From Octopus sinensis (taxonomy: Eukaryota), in the NCBI RefSeq assembly GCF_006345805.1, contig NC_043015.1, forward strand, positions 14,198,001 through 14,262,000: DNA of 64,000 bases. Direction: 5' to 3'. The stretch's first letter is position 1; every line of letters starts with the position of its first letter. A program made the translations under genes and the position numbers. Below, piece after piece: positions 4,693 to 64,000 of the stretch. The notes beneath the pieces were generated by a model. The model searched no databases. It saw nothing but the letters and a program-made list of their open reading frames with translations, and was not told the DNA's origin.

Positions 4693-4786
4693 TGCCATAG
4701 TTACTGAGAACATTCCAATTGTTTTTGAATTCATGATTTAAATTCAACTTTGTTTTTCTTTTTTTTTTTCTTTTTTTTTTTTACAG

Positions 4787-4944
4787 AAACTCCTTTGACA
4801 TTATCATGTACCCTTGGTTCAGATAAGTCTCGCAGTATGATTATTACTTTGGTCAGTGGAGGAGCTCATATGGATTTTCGCAATAGACATGGTTTCACAC
4901 CTATGCATAAAAGTGCCATATGTTCTAACCGTGAATCAATAAAG
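4787..4944 (+). CDS. Shank: Shank exon, ankyrin repeats
   Basis: long poly-T tract ttacag|AA ACT...AAG|gttggc; 158 nt, phase 1/0; ETPLTLSCTLGSDKSRSMIITLVSGGAHMDFRNRHGFTPMHKSAICSNRESIK. Confidence 0.97.
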
Positions 4945-7067: not shown

Positions 7068-7475
7068 CTTTGAAATGATTTGAGTGAATTATCAGAATAA
7101 CTAGTAAATCATTTCATGATTGACTGTCATACATCAAAGACAAAAAGATAGAAAAGAAAAGAATCAAAACAAACATTTTTGTGAATAAGTATAACAGGTA
7201 TTCAAAATGATTGTAAATTTGCTGCACAGATGTATAAAAGTGTGAATGTGAGAGCTTAATATTCATCAATATAGCTTTATGTTCTTGAGGTGTTAATAAT
7301 AGAAAAGTGAAGCCAACCCCATAAGTCATATTTTCATTAGCTTTGAACTTGCTTTGTATATATCTACAGAAAAAACACTTGGTTAAAAAATGTAAAATGA
7401 AATAAAATCTAAATTCAAAAGTGAATTCAAGAGTAATACATATTGTATTACTTTTATACATCTGTGCAGCAAAAA

Positions 7476-7875
7476 GGCGCAGGAGTGGCTGTGTGGTAAG
7501 TAGCTTGCTTACCAACCACATGGTTCCGGGTTCAGTCCCACTGCGTGGCACCTTGGGCAAGTGTCTTCTACTATAGCCTCGGGCCGACCAAAGCCTTGTG
7601 AGTGGATTTGGTAGACAGAAACTGAAAGAAGCCCGTCGTATATATATGTATATATATATATATGTGCGTGTGTGTTTGTGTGTCTGTGTTTGTCCCCCTA
7701 GCATTGTTTGACAACTGATGCTGATGTGTTTACGTCCCCGTCACTTAGCGGTTCGGCAAAAGAGACCGATAGAATAAGTACTGGGCTTACAAAGAATAAG
7801 TCCCGGGGTCGAGTTGCTCGATTAAAGGTGGTGCTCCAGCATGGCCGCAGTCAAATGACTGAAACAAGTAAAAGA
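7476..7875 (+). mobile_element. tRNA-derived SINE family A, young copy
   Basis: A box TGGCTGTGTGG, B box GGTTCAGTCCC, CORE-like accttgggcaagtg, internal (TA/TG)n, tail gtcaaatgactgaaacaagtaaaaga; CpGs retained. Confidence 0.9.
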
Positions 7876-8407
7876 GAAAAAAAGAGAGAGAGAGCTATCT
7901 CTGGAAACTGCCTTATATTGAATCAGCTATGCGTTACAGAAATAGTTTGTAACCTATTTAGAATTAAATAAGAAGGACCCTTAAAACTCAGTGTGCGTTA
8001 GGTTTACAGTCATTAATTATTTTATAAGAGTGTAGATAATTTGAGTTGATAAGGTTTTGGACAACCAGCCAAGAGTCGGATAATTTATATTTATTGGTAT
8101 CAGCATGGAATAGTGTCTATGGCCAAGACACTCAGTTTTTAAATAATTCAATCTATCTAGATGGATATGAATACAACTGGAGCCACTGACTGCAGTAAAC
8201 AGTAGGAGCATTGTAAAACTGATGAGTGGTTTGTTAATTTGCAATGCAGAACCATCTCCAGTGTTCACCCATTTATGTCAGTTTGTCTTGCCAATGGATC
8301 CAGTCAATAGTTTATATTGAAACATTCACAATATTTGATGCAAGATTTTCCTAAGTTCAAATTATTAAATCATATTGAAAAAAAGTCCCACGCATGTATA
8401 TACATAT

Positions 8408-8795
8408 GCAGGAGTGGCTGTGTGGTAAGTAGCTTGCTTACTAACCACATGGTTCCGGGTTCAGTCCCACTGCATGGCACCTTGGGCAAGTGTCTTTTAC
8501 TATAGTCTCAGGCCGACCAAAGCCTTGTGAGTGGATTTGGTAGACGGAAACTGAAAGAAGCCTGTCGTATATATGTACATATATATATGTATGTGTCTGT
8601 GTTTGTCCCCACCCCCCAACATCACTTGACAACTGATGCTAATGTGTTTACGTCCTCATAACTTAGCAGTTCGGCAAAAGAGACCGATAGAATAAGTATT
8701 AGGCTCACAAAGAATAAGTCCTTGGGTCGATTTGCTCAACTAAAGGCAGGACTCCAGCATGGCTGCAGTCAAATGACTGAAACAAGTAAAAGAGT
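8408..8795 (+). mobile_element. SINE family A
   Basis: near full-length match to 7476-7875. Confidence 0.9.
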
Positions 8796-9036
8796 AAGAC
8801 ATATGTATGATATATGTGTCTCCACTGCCACAGGTTCAACCATAAACCTGTCAGAGAGCTAATGGCAAAAATGATCAAGTATCAAATAATAGATTGCTTT
8901 CTTTGGACATAGACCTTACTTTTATTAACCCTTTTGCTTTTTTTTTCAAGCTATTTATTTAACTAAACCAAGTAAGAAAGATATTTTCAACACAGCCTAC
9001 ATATTATTTTATTGAGATCATACTTCTATTACACAG

Positions 9037-9201
9037 ACGCTGTTGGATTTGGGAGCTTCTCCCAACTATAAAGACTTGAGATATTTAACACCATTGTACT
9101 ATGTTGTCAGCAAAGACGATCCTGTTTGTGCAGAGCTGCTTTTGAATGAAAGGGCTATAATTGGAACCACAGATGAACAAGGATGGTTTGAGATTCACCA
9201 G
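9037..9201 (+). CDS. Shank: Shank exon, ankyrin repeats
   Basis: acacag|ACG...CAG|gtaaat; 165 nt; TLLDLGASPNYKDLRYLTPLYYVVSKDDPVCAELLLNERAIIGTTDEQGWFEIHQ. Confidence 0.97.
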
Positions 9202-9799
9202 GTAAATATAGAGTCATGCTAAACAGAATAAAACCTACTTTGCAATTTACACACCTACCTTAAACTATATTTTAAACCAATTACATTTCTTTGAAATCAT
9301 CTTAAATACACCTAAGTGTCAAATCCAATTCTTTGATTCTGTGACTTGTATGTTCTTTGAATTTTATGGTATTTGTTTATGAGGCTCCTAAATTTATTTC
9401 TCACATCCAGTTACATCACACTACTACAGTTATTCAGTTGTCTCTTTTATAATTAATATCAAATATTTGTTATTTATAGAAGTTTCTTATTCAACATCTC
9501 CATAAAGTCGACAACGTAGAGACAAACATTTTAAGCTGTATATTTTGATGTACAGTTGGTTACTGCTATTCTGATTTACTTTTGATGTCTTGGGTGTGAG
9601 AAAACCTACTCAGCTGGGTTTGCAGGTGGTAAAATGGCTTCTAGATAAGGATTAACACTGAATATGGATCACACATAGATTTCCCTTTGGGAAAACATAG
9701 CACCCAACAGCCACCCTGACTAAAGATACAGAAGCCATGGGAAGCAGCATGGGAGATGTGCAGATTAGACAAAAGAACCAATGGTGATGCAGACAAATT

Positions 9800-11109: not shown

Positions 11110-11226
11110 GCCTGCCGCAGTGGCAAAGTTCAGATTTTGGAACATTTAATATATTATGGAGCTGACATGGATGTGCAGAATGCAAGTGGAAATACACCAT
11201 TGCATGTTTGTGCAGTTACAAATCAG
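11110..11226 (+). CDS. Shank: Shank exon, ankyrin repeats
   Basis: ttttag|GCC...CAG|gtttgt; 117 nt; ACRSGKVQILEHLIYYGADMDVQNASGNTPLHVCAVTNQ. Confidence 0.97.
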
Positions 11227-11404
11227 GTTTGTGATTTCAGAATAAAATTAGTTTATAATTTTGTCAGCTTAAGCACCATTAATTCATTCTAAAAATGATT
11301 TTCATTTATTGAATATCGAAAAGTTTTATACAGGTTTATGTTTCCCATTTAAAAAAGAAAATTTTGGCTTAATATTACTGATTATTACTAATCCCTGTGT
11401 GTGT

Positions 11405-11630
11405 ATAAACCACCACCATCATCATCATTGTCATCAACATCATCATTTTCATTGTCGTCATCATTTTCATCATCTTGATCATCTTTGTCATCACCTTCAT
11501 CATCATAGTCACCATTATCTTCATCATCATCATTATTATCGTCTTCATCAACATCCTCATAACCATTGTCATCATCATCTTCATCATCATCATCGTGATC
11601 AGGAGCAGCATGATTATCATCATCATTGTT
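11405..11630. repeat. degenerate (CAT)n trinucleotide tract
   Basis: CAT/CAC-rich low-complexity block; expanded tail of an adjacent minus-strand LINE-tail element; source of spurious His-, Met- and Ile-rich ORFs. Confidence 0.9.
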
Positions 11631-11974
11631 TTAATGTCTACTTTTCCATGCTTGCATGAGTCAGAAAACTCTGACCCATGCAACCAGAGTTTTCTTTGAC
11701 TGGATACCCTCCTTGCCATCAACACTTGGCTTCCAAATGAGGTAATATTATTCCAGCCCATCCAACAACAAACATCTCAGACATATTTATAAGGAGAAAG
11801 AACTGCAAACAAATGACATCATGTGAAGGAGGCTTCTGTTTAGAAGAATCTTGCAACATGTCAAGACATCTCAAGAAACTTGGACAAACAAATGCACTAT
11901 TTACAAACAGCAAAGAACACACATGTAGATGAGGGAAACTCACTTAGGCATAAAAAACACATAGAGATAAATAT

Positions 11975-12330: not shown

Positions 12331-12940
12331 TTTATATATTTAAGAGAGATAGGTAGTTAGGTACTTCTCAAAGCAGCTCAACCTGGAGAGACACTCTGAT
12401 CTTCAAGTTATCCATTCTGTCAAGTAACATTATGCCAGAAATCTTTCAGTGGATCCCCATTTTGGCCCCTTGTATGTATTCATGATTGTACACTTTCAGT
12501 CATTACTCAACACACATAACTATAGGTGGGGACAAGTACAAAAGCCAAACTAAAGATAACAAATTTGGCTTTTTATTTGCTAAAACCAATAAAATATTAG
12601 TGACAGGGCTATTGTTTCTTCTTGTTCACTGCAGAAGTATTTCTGATTAAGTATTTATTACTCATTACATTAAGTATATCAAAACTATCTTAACTATTAA
12701 TTTGAACAGCTTTGTCTCTGATTGCTTGTGCTTTATTACGCTTTATTTACTTTTCCTGTAGAAATATGACAGCTAAAAATAGTGGTTGCGTAAATCTTTT
12801 ATCTTGAAGTAAATATGACCACATTATCTAAGTTCTATTGAGAAATTGAATGGAAATAGCTAAGTAATGGCATTGATTAAATTAATGATATTCAGTTTCA
12901 AAACATTGTTTGTATATGATGTGTGTTGTTTATATTGCAG

Positions 12941-13085
12941 GAGTCTTGTATTCGTGTCCTGCTTTTCCGTGGTGCTAACAAAGTCATTGTAAATCTAAAC
13001 AATCAAACACCATATGAGGCTGCTATTATTGCCGGTAACTTAGATCTTGCTGAAATTATCAAAGGATACAGTTCTGCTGATATAG
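12941..13085 (+). CDS. Shank: Shank exon, last ankyrin repeats
   Basis: ttgcag|GAG...ATA G|gttagt; 145 nt, phase 0/1; ESCIRVLLFRGANKVIVNLNNQTPYEAAIIAGNLDLAEIIKGYSSADI. Confidence 0.97.
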
Positions 13086-13418
13086 GTTAGTGTTTTATTA
13101 TTGACAAGTTTTAATAAATGTTTAAATGTAATTTACTTAATTTTCCAGCTTGCATTGTATCTGTATTGTTATGAAACATGCGTAACTTAACAATAGACTT
13201 ATAAACATCGCAGTGCGGTTAAAGAAAAGAAAACCCATTTTCAATCATATTGTCTCTCGTTTACCTTGGGTAAATGTCTTCTCGCACAGTGTCACATTAA
13301 TCAAAGTCTTGTAAGTGGAATTAAGCAAACAGAAGTTGTGTGGATCACCATCAGAAGTACTTTTGCCTGTGCATATGCCCATATATATGAATATTATATA
13401 TTTCGGTGGGGGGAAGGG

Positions 13419-13890
13419 GGGGACTATGTGGTTATAAGTTTGCTTTACAACCACATAGTTCTGGGTTCAGTCCCATTGTGTGGTACCTTGGGCAAGTGTT
13501 TCTACTATAACTTCTGGCTGACCAAAGCCTTGTGAATGGATTTTGTAGATTGAAACTGAAAGAAGCCTGCTGTGTATACATATGTGTGGATGTGTGCGTG
13601 TGTGTGTGTGCATGCACGCACGCATATGTTTGTGTGTATATATGTGTGTGTGTATGTGTGTTTGTATCTTTGTGCATGTGTTTGTCCCTCAACACTGCTT
13701 GATAACCAGTGTTGGTGTGTTTATGTCCTCATAACTTAGCAGTTCAGCAAAACAGAACAACAGAATAAGTACCGGCCTTTACAAGAAAAAGTAATATGTA
13801 CTGAGGTCAATAAATTTGACTAAAAGTCTTCAAGGTGGTGCCCTAGCATGGCCACAGTTTAATCACAGAAAGAAGTAAAAGATAAAAGAC
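13419..13890 (+). mobile_element. SINE family A, diverged
   Basis: head, CORE-like block, TG microsatellite and tail recognisable. Confidence 0.8.
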
Positions 13891-15160: not shown

Positions 15161-15211
15161 TTAACAATTTTACATTTATTTTATTTCTATTTTGTTTTCT
15201 TTTTTTACTAG

Positions 15212-15454
15212 TTCCTTTTCGAGAATTGCCTCAATATAGCAGTCGCAGGACAATCAAGTATTCAACAAACTTTCGATTGAGTAAATGCCGCAGCGAAACT
15301 CGTCTCAACTTGAGTATGATGGATAGCAATTTCTTTAAGCCTGATGGAAGTTTCCACCGTTACAGTATGAGCTCTGATTGCTATTCAGTCACCAATTCTG
15401 ATTCTCCTCGTTCTATAAGCTCATCAAGTACTTATTCAGGACATATCAATGGAG
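15212..15454 (+). CDS. Shank: Shank exon, post-ANK Ser-rich linker
   Basis: ttttttactag|TT CCT...GGA G|gtatga; 243 nt, phase 1/1; VPFRELPQYSSRR (cf. Shank VPFRETPxYxxRRR) then a Ser-rich tract. Confidence 0.92.
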
Positions 15455-22946: not shown

Positions 22947-24225
22947 CACCCTTACCCTTGTAGCAGTTGACAATGGTGCTGATATGCCAGTCATTGGGTA
23001 TGACTCCATTATGAACTACCTGGTTTACAATGCGAGTGACTAGGCCATAGCCCACATAACCAGCTGATGCTTAAAACAGCTGGTTATGTGGGCTATGGCC
23101 TTGTCACCTGCATTGTAAACCAGGTAGTTCATAATGGAGTCATACCCAATGACTGGCGTAGCAGCACCATTGTCAACTGCTACAAGGGTAAGGAAGATGC
23201 TCTAGATAGAAATAACTACAAGGGTATTAAACTGTTGGATCAGGTGATGAAGGTCACAGAGAGGGTCATAACCCATCTCATTAGGGAGAGAATTTGCTTA
23301 GATGAGATGCAGTTTGGTTTTGTGCCGGGTAGAAGCACCACTGGTGCTATATTCCTGGTCCGACAACTGCAGGAGAAGTACCTAGCTAAAGATAAACCCC
23401 TCTACATAGCTTTTGTGGACTTGGAGAAAGCCTTTGACAGGGTCCCCCGATCCCTTATCTGGTGGTCGATGCGGAAACTGGAGATTGATGAATGGCTAAT
23501 AAGGGCTGTACAGGCCCTATACAGAGAGGCTGTCAGCAAGGTTAGGATTGGCAATGAATATAGTGAAGAATTCCGGGTAGAAGTAGGTGTACACCAAGGC
23601 TCAGCCCTCAGTCCCCTTTTATTCATCATAGTCCTCTAGGCAATAACAGAGGAATTCAAAACAGGTTGCCCCTGGGAGTTCCTCTATGCTGATGACCTGG
23701 CTCTCATAGCAGAATCACTACCGGAACTAGAAAAGAAATTTCGGGTGTGGAAGCAAGGGTTAGAATCAAAGGGCCTTAGAGTAAATGTAGCAAAGACCAA
23801 AGTTATAGTAAGCAGAAAGGCGAACTCAACACACACACACTCAGGCAGGTGGTCCTGCTCGATCTGTAGGAAAGGTGTAGGTAGAAACTCCATAAGATGT
23901 ACCCAGTGTAAGCTATGGATGCATAAGTGGTGCAGCAACATCAAAGGGAAATTAACTGATAAGATAGCTTTCATGTGCGGCAGATGCACAGGGATAATAG
24001 ACACCACAGATAGTCAGAAAACAGATTCACTCACACTCCAGGGGGAGAAACTAGAAGTAGTTGATAGTTTCCACTACTTGGGTGACCAAGTTAGTAGTGG
24101 AGGTGGATGCTCAGAGGGTGTCACCACTAGAATACGAATAGCCTGGGAAAAGTTTAGAAAGCTCCTACCCCTACTGGCAACAAAGGGTCTCTCGCTCAGA
24201 GTGAAAGGTAGATTGTATGATGCAC
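22945..24225 (+). mobile_element. RTE-clade LINE reverse transcriptase fragment with 5' fold-back duplication
   Basis: QFGFVPGRSTT, FVDLEKAFDRVPR, GVHQGSALSPLLF, LYADDL motifs; one in-frame stop (TAG at 23637-23639); 3'-truncated; 22950-23066 is an inverted copy of 23077-23193. Confidence 0.95.
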
Positions 24226-24491
24226 ATTAAAAACAAACAGTAATGGTTGTTAAGCCATAACAAGTTAAAGTGGTGAATGCTGGAGAAATTAGCTTTGGGA
24301 AGACAGGCAAAAGTAGATCTTGTCTTTAGGAAGGAAGTGGAAGGAAAGATAGATAGCTGTTGGTCACGTTTGAACAACGAGAGAGTCAAGGAGGAAGAGT
24401 GAGAGAGAGATAGGGAGACAGTGAAGGAGAGAGAAGAAGAATTAGAGAAAGGGTGGGAGAGAAAAACAGAAAGGAAGAAGAACAGGGGAGG

Positions 24492-25249: not shown

Positions 25250-25357
25250 GACTTCATATGACTGATCATGATTACTATGATGGAAGACGAGAAAACTATG
25301 AAGAAAACTGGTACCCTTATTCTGTGGAAGAAACAAACTTAAATAGTCGCAGGAGAA
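25250..25357 (+). CDS. Shank: probable Shank linker exon
   Basis: tccttttag|GA CTT...AGA A|gtaaat; 108 nt, phase 1/1, open in the required frame: GLHMTDHDYYDGRRENYEENWYPYSVEETNLNSRRR; no homology recognised. Confidence 0.75.
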
Positions 25358-26790: not shown

Positions 26791-28560
26791 TTTTCTTTAA
26801 GAATATTCAGTTGTAAAATTATTTGGAGGACAATGAAAATGCTTTGAACATCCTCCTGAAAAACTTCATCACCAAAACAAACAAGCATAGAAACAGTTTT
26901 GGACTGATTTGAAACATTACTTTTCCATTATTGGATTTGTTTGATTTGATTTATGTAGAAACATAATTAATAATAACAATAATTATCATAACTGTCTTGG
27001 TTTTGAGGTTAAGATTGTAAAAATTAACCTGGGTTTGCACGCGCTAAACAAATTTTGTTCCCGTGTTTATTATTGGCTCCATCAATATACAGATTATTAT
27101 GAAAAGTGGATGTAATAACGTATTTATAAAAAGGAAAATTGTATCATGCAGTAACCAACACTCTGAAAAGTACAGGGGTCAATGAAATAAATCCCAATAA
27201 AATGTAAAATTCTAGGATTTTCACTACAACTGGGATCCCTTTAAAATAGATTGGCAGCGATTTTCTCAAGCCACCCCAGAAATTAAATTTGCAAGAGGGA
27301 TATTTTACATAGACAAACTGAGCTTTCTATAAAACATATATGAAATTATTTCATCTCCACAGAGATTTGTGTTTGTTGTTATGATTCTTGATCAACACCA
27401 ATTTTTGCACTGTGGAAAAGACAATTTTTTAATCATATTCTGAATCTGTTAAGAATGTGTAGTAAGTCCCATAACCTATTGTGTACTATAATGGCATCAC
27501 TTGATGATTATATATTCTTATAGTGTATCTAGGGTGAGTGAGTCTAGTAATGCCTAGACAGCACAGAACATTGTGTACTCTGAGTCCATAGACAACTTAT
27601 GTTGTTGTTTTTGCTGTTGTTGGTGGTGGCGGCAGTTGTCATGATGGTGGTGGTGGTGGTGGTGGTGGCGGCAGTGGTGGCACCAGGATAAAACACCATG
27701 GCCCCCTTTTATGTGTATGTAGGATAGGTTTAACATGCCACCTGGTTCTTTGGCAAAATTGTAAACATTTAAAACACTCCTCCATTGTGAAGGTGATGTA
27801 ATATTTTGATGTTAAGCTTTTAACTGCATCTTTCTTTGCCTAATATCACTTTTTGCTAGTGAAATAGGTTCCCAGTGGAATCCCACCACCATATAGGACA
27901 GGGCCTATCCTGAAGAGTTACACTTCATGAAGCTACTTTGTCAACTGGCACATAGTCATATCCTCACCTCCCTTAGTTCATAACTGGCTGCCAGTGAACA
28001 CAGAATTTTGAGAATTCTGCATGTGGCCACTGGCTTCCAGAGATCAAAGCATTGTTTAGAACTAACTCATTGGTCATGGCTGCCTCTTCCCATTGAAACT
28101 ACTTCACAAATATCTGCATACTTTAGCCTGATCAGGACCTCAACTAAGGGCATGTCTTATTCCTCTCTGAAACCCAAATCTCTTATCAATTCTACTAAGT
28201 GTTGCTGCTACATATAGCAATGTTCTCTACCTACACATGGTTTCATTTAACAGTTAGAAAGATTGAGTTTAGTGTGCCTTTGCCATGGGCATGATGAATA
28301 TTTAACACATTCATGGCTACATGTACCACTAGTGGTTCATCACAAACTTCACACAATCCCCATATGTACCACTGGTTATGCACCTATACTATAATGGAGA
28401 AAGCTGCTTATTAATTAGGTATGTAACAATTACTAAAAGTGCTAAAAGAAAGCAATAATTAAAGGGTTGACCATCTGGAAATATTTTTATAAATTCATGT
28501 TCTAAGAAATTCCCTATAATTTCGATTTCTCAAGTTTATTGAATTTTTTTTAACTTCAAT

Positions 28561-29307
28561 TTCTCACAAATTTAAATATTCATTGCATTCACTGCATCCA
28601 ATTCTTCAAAAATTTAAATATTCATTGCATTCACTGCATCCAATTCTTCAAAAATTTAAATATTCATTGCATTCACTGCATCCAATTCTTCAAAAATTTA
28701 ATATTCATTGCATTCACTGCATCCAATTCTTCAAAAATTTAAATATTCATTTCATTCACTGCATCCAATTCTTCAAAAATTTAAATATTCATTTCATTCA
28801 CTGCATCCAATTCTTCACAAATTTAAATATTCATTGCATTCACTGCATCCAATTCTTCAAAAATTTAAATATTCATTGCATTCACTGCATCCAATTCTTC
28901 AAAAATTTAAATATTCATTTCATTCACTGCATCCAATTCTTCAAAAATTTAAATATTCATTGCATTCACTGCATCCATTCTTCAAAAATTAAATATTCAT
29001 TGCATTCACTGCATCCAATTCTTCAAAAATTTAAATATTCATTTCATTCACTGCATCCAATTCTTCAAAAATTTAAATATTCATTTCATTCACTGCATCC
29101 AATTCTTCAAAAATTTAAATATTCATTTCATTCACTGCATCCAATTCTTCAAAAATTTAAATATTCATTGCATTCACTGCATCCAATTCTTCAAAAATTT
29201 AAATATTCATTTCATTCACTGCATCCAATTCTTCAAAAATTTAAATATTCATTGCATTCACTGCATCCAATTCTTCAAAAATTTAAATATTCATTGCATT
29301 CACTGCA
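28561..29307. repeat. 42-bp minisatellite, ~18 copies
   Basis: unit aatattcatt(g/t)cattcactgcatccaattcttcaaaaattta; only a G/T variant, one A/C change and a few 1-bp deletions. Confidence 0.97.
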
Positions 29308-32214: not shown

Positions 32215-32314
32215 CCTGTTCCCTTGGTGATCTTGATGCTGACACTGAGTATTTTCAACGGAAAACTATAAAACAACGAGCTTTGTTTAATCACTTGGGA
32301 AGGCATTTTATCAA
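32215..32314 (+). CDS. Shank: probable Shank linker exon (phase 1 to 2)
   Basis: ctttgttttgtttcag|CC TGT...ATC AA|gtaagt; 100 nt; only the phase-1 frame is open: TCSLGDLDADTEYFQRKTIKQRALFNHLGRHFI; donor phase 2 equals that of the 50551 exon. Confidence 0.7.
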
Positions 32315-38803: not shown

Positions 38804-39409
38804 ATGTGAACAATATATTCAAAACAAGGGTTGGATATTTAATTTCATTTATATACTTATATATGTGTATTTGAAACAGATAAACCAAAACTTTGCAGTC
38901 TGTTTTGAATAGAATACCAGATTTTTCAGAACAAAACCTTTTTATTACAGTTCATCTGCATTTAGCATCTCTGACTTTCACTCACTCAAGGCCCATTTGT
39001 TGTTTTACTCTTCTGATTGACAAAACATGTATTGCGTTTTATTATATCAAAGATTTTTACGTCTTAATCTATATTTTCTTTATTAAGTTGTGAATCTAAT
39101 ACTTTGAAAACATATACTTCATCTCAGAGGAAGGATTAAAGATCCAATTTCACATTTCTGTTAGTAATACTTGCATTTCTCTCATAAGTAAAATAATTAA
39201 CGAAGTGGTATTTTGATCTCAACAAGTGTCCCAAATACAGCAACAAAATTCCGAAAAGTATTTCAAATACCTGAGTCATTAGCCACCATATTGGTTAGTC
39301 TCAAAGTTTACATCTATACTAAATCCCATGACAATCTCTTTCTCTTTAAAACAGATAAAGTGGCTCAGCTAATTCTCTTGATTCTGAGTATCAAAAGTAT
39401 CAATTCTTT

Positions 39410-39800
39410 TCTAAGACTTTTGCTTCCCAACCACATGGTTCCAGGTTCAGCCCCACTGTGTAACACTTTGAGCATGTGTCTTCAACTATAGCCTCGAGCT
39501 GACCAAAGCTTTGTGAATGGATTTGGTGGATGGGAACTGAAAGAAGCCTGTTGTGTGTGTGTGCACGTGTGTGCGCGCGCATGTGTGTATCTTTGTGTCC
39601 ATATTTGTCCCCTACCACTGCTTGACAACCAGTGTTAGTGTGGTTATGGCCCCATAACTTAATTTGGCAAAAGAGATTTATAGAATAAGTACTAGGCTTT
39701 AAAAAATAAGTCCTGGGGCTGATTTGTTCAACTAAAACTCTTAAAGGTGGTGCTCCAGTGTGGCCACAGTCAAATGACTGAAACAAGTAAAAGATAAAAC
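39410..39800 (+). mobile_element. SINE family A
   Basis: body and tail match 7476. Confidence 0.8.
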
Positions 39801-45311: not shown

Positions 45312-45385
45312 TTTAGAAAAATAGGCAGTTGTATAATTGTGACTAGAAAGGATATATCAAAGTAAACAGTATTCTAGAGTCATTA

Positions 45386-45760
45386 GGAGTGGCTGTGTGG
45401 TAAGTAGCTTGCTTACCAGCTGCATGGTTCCAGGTTCAGTTCCACTGTGTGGCACCTTGGGCAAGTGTCTTCTACTATAGCCTCGGGCTAACCAAAGCCT
45501 TGTGAGTGGATTTGGTAGACGGAAACTGAAAGAAGCCCATCATATATATGTGTGTGCATGTCTGTGTTTGTCCCCCAACATCGCTTGACAACCGATGCTG
45601 GTGCATTTATGTCCCTGTAACTTAGCAGTTCAGCAAAAGAGACTGATAGCGTAAGTGCTAGGCATATAAAGAATAAGTCCTGGGTTTGATTTGCTCGAAT
45701 ACAGGCAGTGCCCCGACACGGCCACAGTCAAATGACAAACAAGTAAAAGAATAAAAGAAT
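45386..45760 (+). mobile_element. SINE family A
   Basis: near full-length match to 7476. Confidence 0.88.
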
Positions 45761-48179: not shown

Positions 48180-50550
48180 TCTTTTATATGCTCAAAGAGA
48201 ACGATAATTTTCTTAAATAGTGATCAAATTACGTTATAATGCTTTTAATACATTTAGGGAAGGCCATTTGCTTAGCTGATATAGTTTTTGGGAGGTAGTG
48301 AACATTTGTAAAAAATATGTTTTGTCTCGGTCAAACATGCAATAAAACACCTCATTTTGCCCCCACCCCTATACGTTGCTGAACTGATTTTCTGTCCAAT
48401 TTCAAGTGGTACTAAATATGAATAAAACCGAATTTTAATTCGAATTATTTTGAAATTTAATTCGAAATATTTTGAAATTTTAGTATAAATATGCGAAAAA
48501 TGTAATGAATAAATTTAGAAAATGTTCAATAATTCACTTGTGTTGCAAAAAAAAAAGGAAGGGAGAAAAGAAAGATAAAAGTTTTATATAATATAAAATG
48601 TGGTATTTTATCAAATGAGTAGTTGATTAAATGGATGGCAGCAGTTAATTACGAGTTGTAGAACAAACGTTTTTTTTTTTACAGTTAATAACTGGTTTGA
48701 GAATGAAATCAAAATTGTAAGTCAAAATGTTCGCTCTATCACCTGTCTAGCCTAACACGTTATATAAAGGAGATAAAGAATAACTTTCGTTAGAGCTGAA
48801 TAGTGTCTGTTGTCAGTACCAAATTTTATGGATGTCAGCCTTTTTATTATACAGGCAGACATCTACTGTTTCTGAAAATAAAAGCAAAATACATCAACAA
48901 AAATATCCTCCCAGCTTGAACAATATGAATTATCAAATGTCTCGACTTCTCACTAGTAAAATTCAGGGCAACTATCTTTTGATGTTGTCGTTAATCGACA
49001 TTTTAGAATTTAAAACTTTTAAAATTTATTTTACTCTTTACCGTTGTTTTCTTTCACTACTTCAACTATGCCTATATATATATATCTTTATTAGATACAA
49101 CATTTAATTATTATTATAAAACTTTAGTTCTTTTCGCGTTTAAAAAAGCAATGAATGTTCTGTATACAATCTTTTTTTATTGTCTAAACGCATGCATCTT
49201 GTATTAAACTTAATATTTTAAATAAAACGTCTCGGTGTAGTTGAGAATGAAATTGTGTTCGGGATGTAACTGGATCCTATACCTTTTAGAAATCAAGCGT
49301 CATTTTAAAAACAAAGTTACTTTAAAATCGATATGCTTATAAGCAGCATAAAGCTATTGGAGAGTGTGATACCGTTAAACTAAGAAGAACATTTATAGTA
49401 TCCCGTTAATCCTAATTAATAACAAAAATCAGTTGCAGATAACGTGTTATCTAAGAAAGGATTTAATGCTTGGCAACAGAGGTGGATGGTTGTGAAAGGG
49501 TTGTTTGTTAGCTTTCTGATAATTTAGTCTAATTTTATTTTTAGTATTGATAATTTATACTTTGAAACAATATCTGCTAGCAAAAGTTGACAAAAATAAA
49601 ATTAAATAAAACATTTGACACGTCATGCTGCAAATTGGTTACAGGTGGCTAATTAGTTTACCTAGCCATGGCAGTTGCTGGCCGCTGAAGCTGCCATCCA
49701 CTAAACTGGAGAAACTGCAACATATTGGTTAGGACAGGCTTTATGAAAAATTTCCAGCTCCTTTTAAATATGTAGCTTATACTAAGTATAAGAACATTTA
49801 ATATGTCCTCAAAGCTAAAGCAGTGGAGCGCTAAAGAAAGTATAATGATAATTTGGAAGTTTAAAAAAACAAATACTGACTTGCTACTTGTAACTGATTT
49901 ATTTATTACCCTAGCAACAAGTAGCTGTTTCGCCATCTATCTACCTTCACCCTTTCTTTCATTGATATGGTTTCGTCAAACATCTATTTCACGGCTGCTT
50001 TTCTGTTGCAGGTCTCCCTTACCTTTTGCTGATTATTTTAACTCGGAAATAACTTACATTGTTAACATTTGATGCCATTAATCACCCACTCTTCTCTCTC
50101 TTTCCTTTACAATACTACCTGTCCATTTACTAATCGTTAATAACAAACTTGTTCCATAGAGCTCTGGACCTGTATATTGACATTTATTGATTACTTTCAC
50201 TCAGGACTTCGTTTCGAGGTCGGAAAAGAAAATTCATCTAAGAAGGATACTTAGGTGAAGCTTCAAGAATATTCTCGTTTTACTTTTTTTTTCTTTTTAC
50301 TTTCAAAATAATCATATTTGGTCGATATTTAGATGAAAGTTAACTACAAAAGTTTTTTTTTCTTTTGCTCCTTCCCAGAGGAACTTTCGACTTTCATTCG
50401 TTAAAATATTTATTGGTAGTATTGGTACTTGTCTTTGAGTTCTGTAATAGATGAAGAGACTAGTAATTAATAAGAGAGGAAAATGGTGTGGGATAAAAAA
50501 GCAACTATAACTAACGAATAGTTATTGTAGTCGATGTTTACATATTTTTA
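48180..50550 (+). promoter_or_regulatory. putative intragenic promoter / 5'UTR region (CpG-retaining, repeat-poor)
   Basis: Roughly 40+ CpG in ~2.4 kb by eye versus about 2 in 18950-20050; no SINE copies; directly upstream of the 50551 exon; TSS not identifiable. Confidence 0.45.
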
Positions 50551-51788
50551 ATGAAAATGACTCAAAGGGCTTTGAAGAAAAAAAATGTGGGGGGAAAATT
50601 AATTGTAAATTCTCAGGAGGACGATTTACCAGTAGATATTTCCAATTATAATTTTGAGAATTCGCCGAAGCTAACAAATGGTTTAAACTCGAATACACCA
50701 TCATTCCGAAGTGATCTCATTCATCCAGGGTTTGCATTTTTAAAATCTCGATTGAAAAAGAAATCTGTGATTTCTAAAACTGATACAAATGAGAAAATTC
50801 AGGCAGATCCATGTCGTCCATTGTTTCAACTAAAGAAAAAACCGAGTCCTGATTTGAATGGAGAAGATATTTTCGTGATCACACCAATCGATGTTGAAAA
50901 TAATGTAAACAACAACAGATCTTCTGAAAGTTTCGATTCATTAAAAGAACAAACAGCTAACGATTGTAAATGTCCTGACTCGAAACCTTGTACCTTAGAT
51001 GATAGAGTTACCAGGTATATTCTACCCGAAAATGTGGAGGAGGAAGATTCTGGGAGGGGAGTTTCTGAAAATTCCGTCTCTGACACAGATTGGCAAGATA
51101 AGACGACGTCACACGGAGAAACAGCGACGTCACGTCAGGTAAAAAACGACACACCTATTAATTACTTTTCAATCACTAACAGGCCGTCAACTGAACACGA
51201 CCCACCTGTAACTTCACATCGGAACTTTTTTCACCAACAACAACCACACATGTCTCCTTGGCCACTTTCAAGCCAACCTTTAAAAATATCAGCACAACGT
51301 AAAATTTCGAAGCCTTCAGGGGAATTTATTTTAGTCGGACCCTATGAATCCAGACATGAACCGTTACAATATGCTCCATCACCTTTAAGTGATTCCAGGG
51401 GCAAATATTCCAGTATGCCTTCGTTGGCGATACTTGGAAATAATTCTAAGGAGGAGAAAAAATTAAAAAAGATATTGAAGAAAGAAAAAAAGAAAGAAGA
51501 AAAAAGGATGAAAAAAGATATGAAAAACAACGATTCATATCCAAGTTATAGTTTACCTCACAAAACGAAAATTCACAGACCTCTTACAGTTTATGAGAAA
51601 CCAAGGCCTGGATTGAAATTAACCCCTGTCCCTATCTCCATAGAAGAGCCCTTGTATGCTGTCCCCATCATTTATGACAAACCTAAATTAGACCATTATG
51701 CTAGTAGCCCCGATTTATTAAGATTACAGCAGATATATAACATTGGGTCACCAGAATGGTTACCCCAACCTGTTGATAACAACAACAG
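50551..51788 (+). CDS. large coding exon, probable intragenic alternative first exon of Shank encoding a novel ~413-aa disordered N-terminus
   Basis: Longest ORF in the window, non-repetitive and protein-like; in-frame stop at 50512-50514 precedes ATG 50551/50557; ends AAC AG|gtgagt (consensus donor, phase 2) where the stop TGA is part of the donor; attribution to Shank inferred from strand, position and phase. Confidence 0.72.
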
Positions 51789-53144
51789 GTGAGTATTTTT
51801 TTTTCCCTCCATTCTTTTGGTCCCTTAGTTTTTTTATTAAAACCTCTCTGTCTGTTTGTCTCTCTCTCTCTCTCTATTTATCTATCTATCTATCTTTTTT
51901 ATACTGAATGTGTGTCTTTGTGTGTGTGTTCGCCCTTATTGTACATTCTCACGTGTATATCTTTCACACAAGAAGATACAGGTGGCTTGCTAAGTTCTGT
52001 TCCAACCTAGTTCACCTACTAATGTTTTTTTTTTTTTCTTTTCTAACTGCTATAATTACTTCCAGTTGTTAATTGTGTAATGTTAATGTAAAAGACAATT
52101 TCCCTAAACTATCAAAGTATTGCTTTACTAACAATTAAACGGTATAAGATTGGTAGGACAACATTTAATTATTAGAATTGCAAAGTTTGCGTTAAAACAC
52201 TCATCATAAAAATGGCTCGAAATTCAGAATGATGATAATATGACCTAAATTAGTTTCGGTTCTAAAATCTTTCTCTTTTTAGTACCAGAACAACATTAAC
52301 TAGATGGTTAATAATTAGCTCTATTTCGGCTCTGATGGAGCAGAACTGTAGTCGAAATCACCCCTGCGTTGTCTCACCTGTTTGTTGTTGTTGTTGTTAT
52401 TGCTTAAGCCCTGAGTTGGTCATTATTTAGACTTGACGTACGATCAAAGGCATTCTTACCATGACTATCCCAGCTATTTTCAAGTTTGCCAAATGCTTAG
52501 TTATTCTGAGACAGTATAGGTGTGGTGTGAGGTTAGGTCGACTGATTGTCATAGTTTGTCTTGTGAATAGGAGCGGCGATGTATTTTAAAAATACATAAT
52601 GAGTAAATATTATGTATGAGTGAATAGATATTTGGGCGTAAATTGGTGAATGGGAGCAGCTTTTTGTCAACAAAAAACTGATTACCATGAGGCAAAGAAT
52701 TTAAATTATGAGAGCAAAAGATATTTAATAACACACACACACCTATAATAACAGTTTGACTCAGCTTCTTATGAATGTTTTGAGTGTCACATTCTTTCGT
52801 TTGTTCACTCATTCGTGTGTGTGTGTATGTATGTATATATATATATATATACATACATACATACACACACAAGTTTGATGATGGGACCACCTTAATCTCG
52901 AAGTCTCTTAAATAAGGAGATACACAGAATAGCGCAAATATAATTGGTTTAGAGTAAAATATTTGTTTAAAAACAAAACGTCCAGTTGTTGTCTAGAGTC
53001 TAGACTGTAGACGTTTCAAAACCTCTAGGTACAAGCTTATTGATTTCTCATCCAGGCTCTGATCAGGAATTGTGGTGCTTCAAACCTATTCGTTTACAAA
53101 CTTTGGGGTAATAGTTGGATGGTCTAACGCGCGCACATATAAAC

Positions 53145-63700: not shown

Positions 63701-64000
63701 GTTAATATCTATACATGTATCTTTGTATGTGTGTATATATATTTTTCAGTTGCATTGAATTACTTTTTCCTTGTATTGACTTACTTTATCTCTAGATTTT
63801 TTGATACACAATTTATATTGTATTTCCTTCACACACACGCAGCACTTTGTCTAGATTTTTGATGCAATTTGTACTTCTTTCATGCATACACACACACACA
63901 TAATATCTCCTCATAGCTAGACATGCTTTCATGGAAGGCTGAACATAAAGAACACTACTTCAATGACAGTAGCGTTTCTTTACAACCATCATGTGATGTC

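Follow-up and report, generated by a model that had tools for sequence, protein, structure and literature searches.

What does a long open reading frame (ORF) that ends at a splice donor encode when it lies downstream of the first exons of a Shank gene? The 64,000-nucleotide stretch of the Octopus sinensis genome analysed here (contig NC_043015.1, positions 14,198,001 to 14,262,000 of the forward strand; hereafter the window) carries exons for the N-terminal part of Shank, a core organiser of excitatory postsynaptic densities, and such an ORF sits 18 kb downstream of the last of these long-isoform exons. A sequence-only reading of the window had proposed that the ORF is an intragenic alternative first exon, which gives Shank a different N terminus in place of the SPN and ankyrin-repeat (ANK) domains; it had also considered an internal exon and a separate nested gene. 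The conserved start and donor, orthologous RNA contigs and predicted isoforms from Haliotis all support the first proposal. We put a probability of roughly 0.85 on the reading that positions 50557–51788, together with contiguous upstream untranslated sequence, form the first coding exon of a short Shank isoform with an intragenic start. Coordinates are those of the window, and features lie on its plus strand unless stated otherwise.

The ORF occupies positions 50551–51792 and encodes 413 amino acids. It is preceded by an in-frame TAA stop at 50512–50514 and opens with ATG AAA ATG (50551–50559), which places potential start codons at 50551 and 50557, the second in the context aaaATGa. Counted from 50551, 412 codons and two nucleotides lead up to position 51788, and the 3′ sequence ...AAC AAC AAC AG|GTGAGT thus ends the exon in phase 2 at a 5′ splice site (51787–51794). 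The TGA stop of the unspliced ORF (51790–51792) falls within the donor GTGAGT (51789–51794). The exon at 32215–32314 (cag|CCTGT...ATCAA|gtaagt) also ends in phase 2 and contains no stop codon. The upstream stop, the ORF, the donor and the phase shared with position 32314 had all been pointed out before, and each can be read directly in the sequence.

A chance origin of the ORF can be excluded. The stop-free stretch of 425 codons is the longest in the window, and the runner-up (291 codons) lies within a minisatellite. In block-wise shuffles of the window, the longest stop-free stretch had a median of 135 codons and reached 231 at most, against the 425 observed. Given that stop codons occur at a frequency of 0.058, the expected number of such stretches is about 1.4e-6 per window. 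The minisatellite from which the 291-codon stretch derives is located at 28557–29307 and consists of 18 copies of a 42-bp unit that are 97% matching.

The ORF had been described as non-repetitive, which holds overall; the exception is an A-rich patch encoding Lys and Glu at 51465–51527, flagged by Tandem Repeats Finder (TRF). The basic clusters quoted at the same time are present in the translation. The suggestion that the ORF lies in a CpG island stands only in a loose sense: the ratio of observed to expected CpG (CpG o/e) is 0.7–1.2 over ~48.0–51.5 kb, compared with 0.32 for the whole window, but the GC content of this CpG-undepleted patch is only 28–41%.

A word-indexed protein search with the ORF returned two relatives, P0001 (81% identical) and P0002 (31% identical). 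The source of P0001 is a set of five short contigs from a sister octopod (L001–L005), and that of P0002 is a 133-kb genomic contig (L006). The five contigs are colinear with positions 48761–51840 of the window at ~86% nucleotide identity (L001–L003 from 48761) and are bounded by AT microsatellites on both sides. Identity to the sister octopod is 83–96% in the coding exon and 92–97% over the non-coding segment 49901–50350 (+) upstream of the ATG, with values of ~0.77–0.93 elsewhere upstream. This segment is a candidate for a conserved 5′ untranslated region (5′UTR) or promoter element, and conservation and CpG o/e together mark 48761–50550 as the candidate 5′UTR and promoter region of the short isoform.

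The reading frame stays open in P0002 despite amino-acid identity of only 31%. The ratio of nonsynonymous to synonymous substitution rates (dN/dS) is 0.47 between the window exon and L001 (bootstrap 95% confidence interval 0.32–0.75; dS 0.16) and 0.29 (0.22–0.37) for a second pair, the orthologous exon in L006 and in an RNA contig, L007. Judged by these ratios, the exon is under purifying selection, and the values fit a constrained but fast-evolving disordered region. The sequence-only reading had proposed a conservation and dN/dS comparison of this kind, and its outcome, including homologues across molluscs, is in line with a coding exon.

The pattern of conservation also delimits the exon. 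The peptide MTQRALKKK is identical in the window, P0001 and P0002, and it begins at the third residue of the window ORF (Met3, position 50557). Conservation sets in at this Met in all 13 of the aligned homologues, and the first ATG, at 50551, is common only to the window and the sister octopod. The true start is probably 50557 on this comparison, which would leave a coding part of 410 codons plus two nucleotides (50557–51788). In-frame stops lie upstream of the start in the orthologues as well: a TGA immediately before ATG AAA ATG in L001, and stops 14 codons upstream in L006, 12 codons upstream in L007 and 30 codons upstream in L008, another RNA contig.

At the other end, the donor AG|GTGAGT is identical in L001, and L006 has GAT GAA AG|GTGCGT at the same place and in the same phase. 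The open frame of L006 extends three codons past the donor to a different stop codon, and other species differ again. Across these alignments it is the splice site that is conserved, not the stop codon. Both the start peptide and a phase-2 AG|GT donor are kept in octopods, in a distant cephalopod-like relative, in gastropods and in bivalves. The product of 413 residues given in the sequence-only reading is to be amended at both ends, as the conserved start is Met3 and the terminal Arg is intron read-through, its place being taken by Ser in spliced orthologues.

We then searched a profile of three sequences (the window protein, P0001 and P0002) against 1.84 billion representative proteins at E ≤ 0.001. 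Sixteen proteins matched, with E-values of 7e-245 to 5e-106 for the closest relatives and 1e-13 to 1e-4 for other molluscs; for six of them the 90% cluster gives a source name, in each case that of a mollusc Shank relative. The third match, P0003, is a protein of 1805 amino acids in which residues 1–543 are homologous to the exon product. Pfam places a PDZ domain at 560–646 and a SAM domain at 1735–1795 of this protein and finds no ANK and no SH3. P0003 and four near-identical proteins (P0019, P0020, P0022 and P0024) come from contigs of 5.7–8.1 kb, and because each of these has a single 5.4-kb ORF, we take them to be assembled mRNAs.

Four RNA contigs from four sequencing runs (L007–L010) carry one ORF each, of 1794–1809 amino acids, with the homologous exon first. 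They are spliced precisely at the conserved donor (...GACGAAAG|TGATTATGCTCC). The junction, ...GAT GAC GAA AG|T GAT TAT GCT CCG, is read as DDDE-S-DYAPRAVVLRKGPNGFGFVLRG and leads into PDZ and then SAM. The order of domains is N-terminal region, PDZ, proline-rich region and SAM, without SPN, ANK or SH3. Their 5′UTRs contain in-frame stops and are colinear with genomic contig L006 throughout, that of L008 over 1388 nt. Because the 5′UTR is colinear with the genome for ~1.4 kb, the exon of this distant relative must span 3 kb or more, and no coding exon upstream is spliced to it. In L006, no PDZ or post-SH3 exon was found at a distance of up to 10 kb from the orthologous exon.

The relative represented by L006–L010 is apparently another cephalopod; we call it cephalopod-like because its exon, which has the same first nine residues, resembles that of octopus much more than the exons of gastropods and bivalves do. 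Its transcripts agree with the octopus exon in these residues, in donor position and phase, in splicing to the PDZ exon and in the PDZ and SAM domains of the product. They differ in that the exon is longer (~550 codons) and 31–37% identical to the octopus exon. Over positions 1–40 of L010, the A-run for the KKK that closely follows the start differs in length from L007 and L008, which shifts the called ORF to a VRPFQQ start; the difference probably reflects misassembly of the homopolymer and not biology.

Outside cephalopods, the region is already part of predicted Shank isoforms. P0006, the fourth large match of the profile search, is RefSeq XP_046359234.2 (Haliotis rufescens LOC124137107 isoform X4), and its cluster includes XP_067674842.1 (H. 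asinina SHANK2-like X3) and XP_071112288.1 (H. cracherodii SHANK2-like X4). All three are computer predictions in which an MTQRAIKK start is followed by PDZ and SAM and which contain no SPN, ANK or SH3. The N terminus had been thought to resemble no recognisable protein, and this view must be given up, as it is homologous to the N termini of these isoforms. Ser followed by [DE]YAPR is found at the splice junction of P0003, P0006 and P0030, and most genomic ORFs of other molluscs stop a few codons from an ...R or ...VR, which results from reading through the AG|GT donor.

The octopus and Haliotis versions share the start peptide (MTQRALKKK and MTQRAIKK), the order of the motifs KFSSMPSL, Lys/Glu helix, ...VY.RP..L..VPI... 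and Y/H-x-S-x-PDLLR-x-Q-x-Y, the Ser junction into [DE]YAPR and PDZ followed by SAM, and the placement of the exon, after the post-SH3 linker and before the PDZ exon. A merged H. rubra model has the order ANK, SH3 part, post-SH3 linker, MTQRAIKK exon and PDZ, which is the order in the window. The two versions differ in that identity is only ~26% and the octopus exon is shorter; its charged helix is reduced in length, its LPRNWxYVxKPIE motif is degenerate, and it also lacks the KF[IM]ALP[DN]G and YxKRSxSTPPD blocks of non-cephalopods. By sequence, predicted abalone isoforms and cephalopod-like transcripts already contain the orthologue of the octopus exon, an assignment that is solid and not surprising.

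The link to the long isoform comes from the exon at 32215–32314 (CSLGDLDADTEYFQRKTIKQRALFNHLGRHFI), which ends at the donor AA|GTAAGT in phase 2. Its peptide corresponds to the gastropod post-SH3 linker RRAGSMGxL...NRNTLAAL and to a rotifer segment, ...SRDALSALMINNDTY, that is directly continuous with the PDZ domain. In the long Shanks of both rotifers and annelids, the post-SH3 linker runs directly into PDZ, so the expected partner of 32314 is the PDZ exon. Neither tblastn with orthologues, nor a vertebrate sequence used as a lead only, nor motif scans located such an exon in the window; it must therefore lie beyond position 64000. An exon common to 32314 and 51788 had been predicted from phase, and the rotifer and annelid linker together with orthologous splicing identify the PDZ exon as the probable shared partner.

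In the model that we favour, transcription would start inside the Shank gene, within the intron that follows the post-SH3 linker exon. The start codon would be either that of the conserved Met of MTQRALKKK (50557) or the ATG two codons before it, which is specific to octopods. Splicing would link position 51788 to the PDZ exon, downstream of the window's 3′ end, with a junction codon AG+Y for Ser followed by DYAPR..., and the predicted octopus junction is ...AACAACAACAG|YGAYTAYGC.... The product would comprise an N-terminal extension of ~411 residues, PDZ, the proline-rich region and SAM, and would lack SPN, the ankyrin repeats and the SH3-like piece. The replaced part would thus include SPN and ANK, as proposed earlier, and also the SH3-like exon at 25250–25357, which the short isoform would skip. 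From 32314, the long isoform would be spliced to this PDZ exon as well, in the same phase. Because 32314 and 51788 share a phase and would share this PDZ exon, the two N termini are best seen as alternatives set by promoter choice. That octopus transcription and splicing resemble those of the orthologues, where the promoter lies and what the extension does are all inferred here by comparison of sequences.

Several observations weigh against this model. Exact look-ups of the window ORF in a collection of gene positions returned no octopod transcript. The contigs L001–L005 continue through the donor into the intron and are either genomic DNA or unspliced RNA. Indications of a start site in the window are limited to raised CpG o/e and conservation at 48.8–50.5 kb, and no nucleotide similarity was found between octopod and distant relative in the 5′UTR or upstream sequence. 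Neither the acceptor nor the phase of the PDZ exon can be read, as this exon falls outside the window. Lastly, two gene models, Tegillarca KAJ8314594.1 and H. rubra XP_046581760.1, put the region inside a long protein.

Some annotations would instead divide the locus into two transcription units, one for an SPN–ANK–SH3 protein and one for an MTQRA–PDZ–Pro–SAM protein, so that the exon would be the first of a separate gene and the long isoform rare or absent. In Lottia, Patella, Nucella, Batillaria and Lymnaea, the SPN–ANK(–SH3) model ends a few residues past the post-SH3 linker (P0034, P0035, P0037, P0038 and P0039), many genomic and RNA ORFs begin at the MTQRA exon, and no cephalopod transcript that joins ANK to PDZ was found. 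The lack of long transcripts weighs little, as the word-indexed search gave no protein longer than 800 amino acids and missed known members. Exon 32215–32314 itself speaks for continuation: it has no stop codon, and its consensus donor AA|GTAAGT is in a phase that fits the PDZ exon. Annelid and rotifer long Shanks link the same linker directly to PDZ, and the Haliotis RefSeq entries are labelled as isoforms X3 and X4 of one locus. We consider such a division of the gene improbable.

We give still less credence to the idea that the long isoform includes the ORF as an internal cassette exon, entered through an acceptor such as the one at 50530, so that SPN, ANK, this region and PDZ would all be part of one protein. 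It draws on the two long models just mentioned, in which the region is found between the SH3 part and PDZ (KAJ8314594.1, 2166 amino acids; XP_046581760.1, 2679 amino acids). Both look like merged predictions, and the H. rubra model runs through non-conserved sequence into the ATG, as is typical of a merged prediction. The acceptor at 50530 is preceded by a purine-rich tract, with another AG 9 nt upstream, and it is in phase 1, which does not match the phase-2 end at 32314. Between the corresponding site and the ATG, the sister octopod (L001) has a 2-nt deletion and an in-frame TGA, and L006 has an A-rich stretch and its in-frame stop 14 codons upstream of the ATG. The onset of conservation at Met in 13 of 13 homologues and the colinearity of the RNA contigs with the genome up to 1.4 kb upstream, where they are not joined to upstream exons, argue in the same direction, and we regard an internal exon as very unlikely. 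A free-standing nested gene for a 413-residue protein, with the TGA at 51790 as its true stop and GTGAGT as a coincidence, would account for the ORF having its own ATG and stop and for L001–L005 being unspliced at the donor, but it is contradicted by the shifting stop (three codons further in L006 and different in other species), by the conserved AG|GT and phase, by use of the donor in four RNA contigs and by RefSeq isoforms that continue into PDZ, and it can be all but dismissed.

As for the extension itself, our favoured short isoform would begin with a region that belongs to a recognisable family. Fourteen of the 16 profile matches have a variant of M[TSA]Q[RK]A[IL]KK at their N terminus, and 15 share a C-terminal motif block. 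The exceptions are P0016, which has no such start and keeps the C-terminal block, and P0011, a G-patch protein with no relation to the family. An M[TSA]Q start, more or less fitting, is present in 11 of the 12 genomic-ORF matches other than P0016; among the genomic-ORF matches, the exact form M[TSA]Q[RK]A[IL]KK occurs only in P0001, P0002, P0004, P0005, P0008, P0012 and P0014. Starts that depart from it are those of P0010 (MSGRAIERR) and P0007 (MTKKSEKQ).

An alignment of 13 sequences has 23 invariant columns and resolves a series of ordered motifs: the N-terminal nonapeptide, E[FV]I..[LM][VM]G.Y, K[FY]SSMP[ST]L, a Lys/Glu-rich stretch, LPRNWxYVxKPIExVYxRPxLxLxAVPIDFEDG (degenerate in octopus), a proline run and YxSxPDLLRxEQxYG. 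The window protein has family motifs in this order, namely MTQRALKKK, GKYSSMPSL, KEEKKLKKILKKEKKKEEKRMKK, TVYEKPRPGLKLTPVPIS and HYASSPDLLRLQQIY. The Lys/Glu-rich segment (51445–51531) is conserved, and it is longer in other molluscs.

AlphaFold2, run with the 13-sequence alignment, gave a mean predicted local distance difference test score (pLDDT) of 47 and a predicted template modelling score (pTM) of 0.18. The sole confidently modelled element is a helix at residues 297–325 (pLDDT ~88–89), and the Lys/Glu-rich segment is accordingly predicted to form a long charged α-helix. A Pfam scan of the ORF found no family, a PDB profile search with 13 homologues returned nothing meaningful, and the search of 1.84 billion representatives yielded no vertebrate proteins. 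We also considered whether the C-terminal block (HYASSPDLLR...) is a copy of the ancestral SH3–PDZ linker (vertebrate RHYTVGSYDSL...) and rejected this, as hhalign gave a probability of 0.06%. The N-terminal region is, on these models, mollusc-wide, mostly disordered and unnamed, and the probable role of the extension is to provide sites for isoform-specific docking or targeting, not a folded domain.

Isoform diversity of vertebrate Shanks also comes largely from internal promoters, and forms of Shank2/ProSAP1 begin at SH3 or PDZ. To our knowledge, the unique N termini of vertebrate Shanks are short peptides. The logic of the truncated vertebrate forms is the same as that proposed here: an internal promoter and a unique first exon, with PDZ, the proline-rich region and SAM kept and the N-terminal domains lost. 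For Shank3, multiple intragenic promoters produce Shank3a–f with different domain combinations (PMC4113141). No sequence relation between the vertebrate and mollusc forms was found, and the unique part in molluscs is 400–650 residues long and conserved in the phylum. By this analogy, the resemblance is one of mechanism, not of descent of the exon.

A literature search found no paper that describes a short Shank isoform in molluscs. Our results suggest that cephalopods and other molluscs also make a Shank isoform that starts at PDZ from inside the gene, here with a long conserved extension for which no function has been described. Annotations should assign the exon to Shank as an alternative first exon and should neither call it as a separate 413-residue gene nor merge it into the long isoform. 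It also offers a defined target for asking whether octopus synapses mainly use the short or the long scaffold. It is conceivable, although we think it rather unlikely, that the MTQRA[IL]KK extension of 400–650 residues is a mollusc-wide module that has become the main N terminus of neuronal Shank, with the gene working as two units. If true, a core postsynaptic scaffold would have been rewired in a lineage-specific manner within the phylum to which cephalopods belong.

The remaining Shank exons of the window belong to the long isoform. Using tblastn with mollusc Shank models, we located SPN and ankyrin-repeat exons at approximately 219–362, 479–571, 2797–2907, 4786–4944, 9034–9204, 11110–11226 and 12938–13081. 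These exons are 45–85% identical to the mollusc models, and Pfam ankyrin families match them when they are joined. The joined exons matched Shank N-terminal proteins throughout animals, with the best match in Lottia (58% identity over 97% of the query); their best relatives are Shank N-terminal models with FERM_f0 and Ank domains. A post-ANK linker exon (VPFRELPQYSSRR...NSDSPRSISSSS) follows at 15211–15450, with approximate boundaries from tblastn, and matches gastropod VPFRE[IV]PKYS[DE]RRK...YNSDSPRSLSISS.

The SH3-like exon at 25250–25357 (LHMTDHDYYDGRRENYEENWYPYSVEETNLNSRRR) was found by tblastn against Haliotis, Nucella and Batillaria. It covers the C-terminal half of the domain only, is in phase 1 at both ends and has the boundaries ttttag|GACTT...GGAGAA|gtaaat. 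It reads ...YYDGRRENYEENWYPYSVEE, with WYP instead of the usual WFP, and has no Pfam SH3 match. Searches of the window, including 15.5–50 kb, turned up no exon for the N-terminal half of SH3. The same half-SH3 occurs in models from Lottia, Patella and Haliotis, and Nucella and Batillaria have a full SH3. From these comparisons, the SH3 might have degenerated; alternatively, some molluscs might encode its first half in an optional exon.

The window also holds several repeats and a retrotransposon fragment. Just downstream of an ankyrin exon, a simple repeat rich in CAY/CAT (11309–11761) gives rise to His-rich (plus strand) and Met-rich (minus strand) pseudo-ORFs and is non-coding. A retrotransposon fragment lies in an intron at 23040–24227 (+), where two adjacent stop-free segments match RVT_1 (E = 1.5e-16 and 1e-5); the second of these also has a weak match to a PHD finger below the cutoff (E = 7e-5, 23.2 versus 24 bits). 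ORFs that resemble the RVT_1 segments are present at ~36.9–38.2 kb and 43.6–44.2 kb and have no Pfam match. Finally, a short dispersed repeat occurs on both strands at many sites, for example at 7406–7573, 8311–8502, 13197–13532, 39201–39488 and 45343–45477. Its translations read ...LLTNHMVPGSVPLxGTLGKCLLL... on one strand and ...RRHLPKVPRSGTEPGT... on the other, and it is probably an element resembling a short interspersed nuclear element (SINE).

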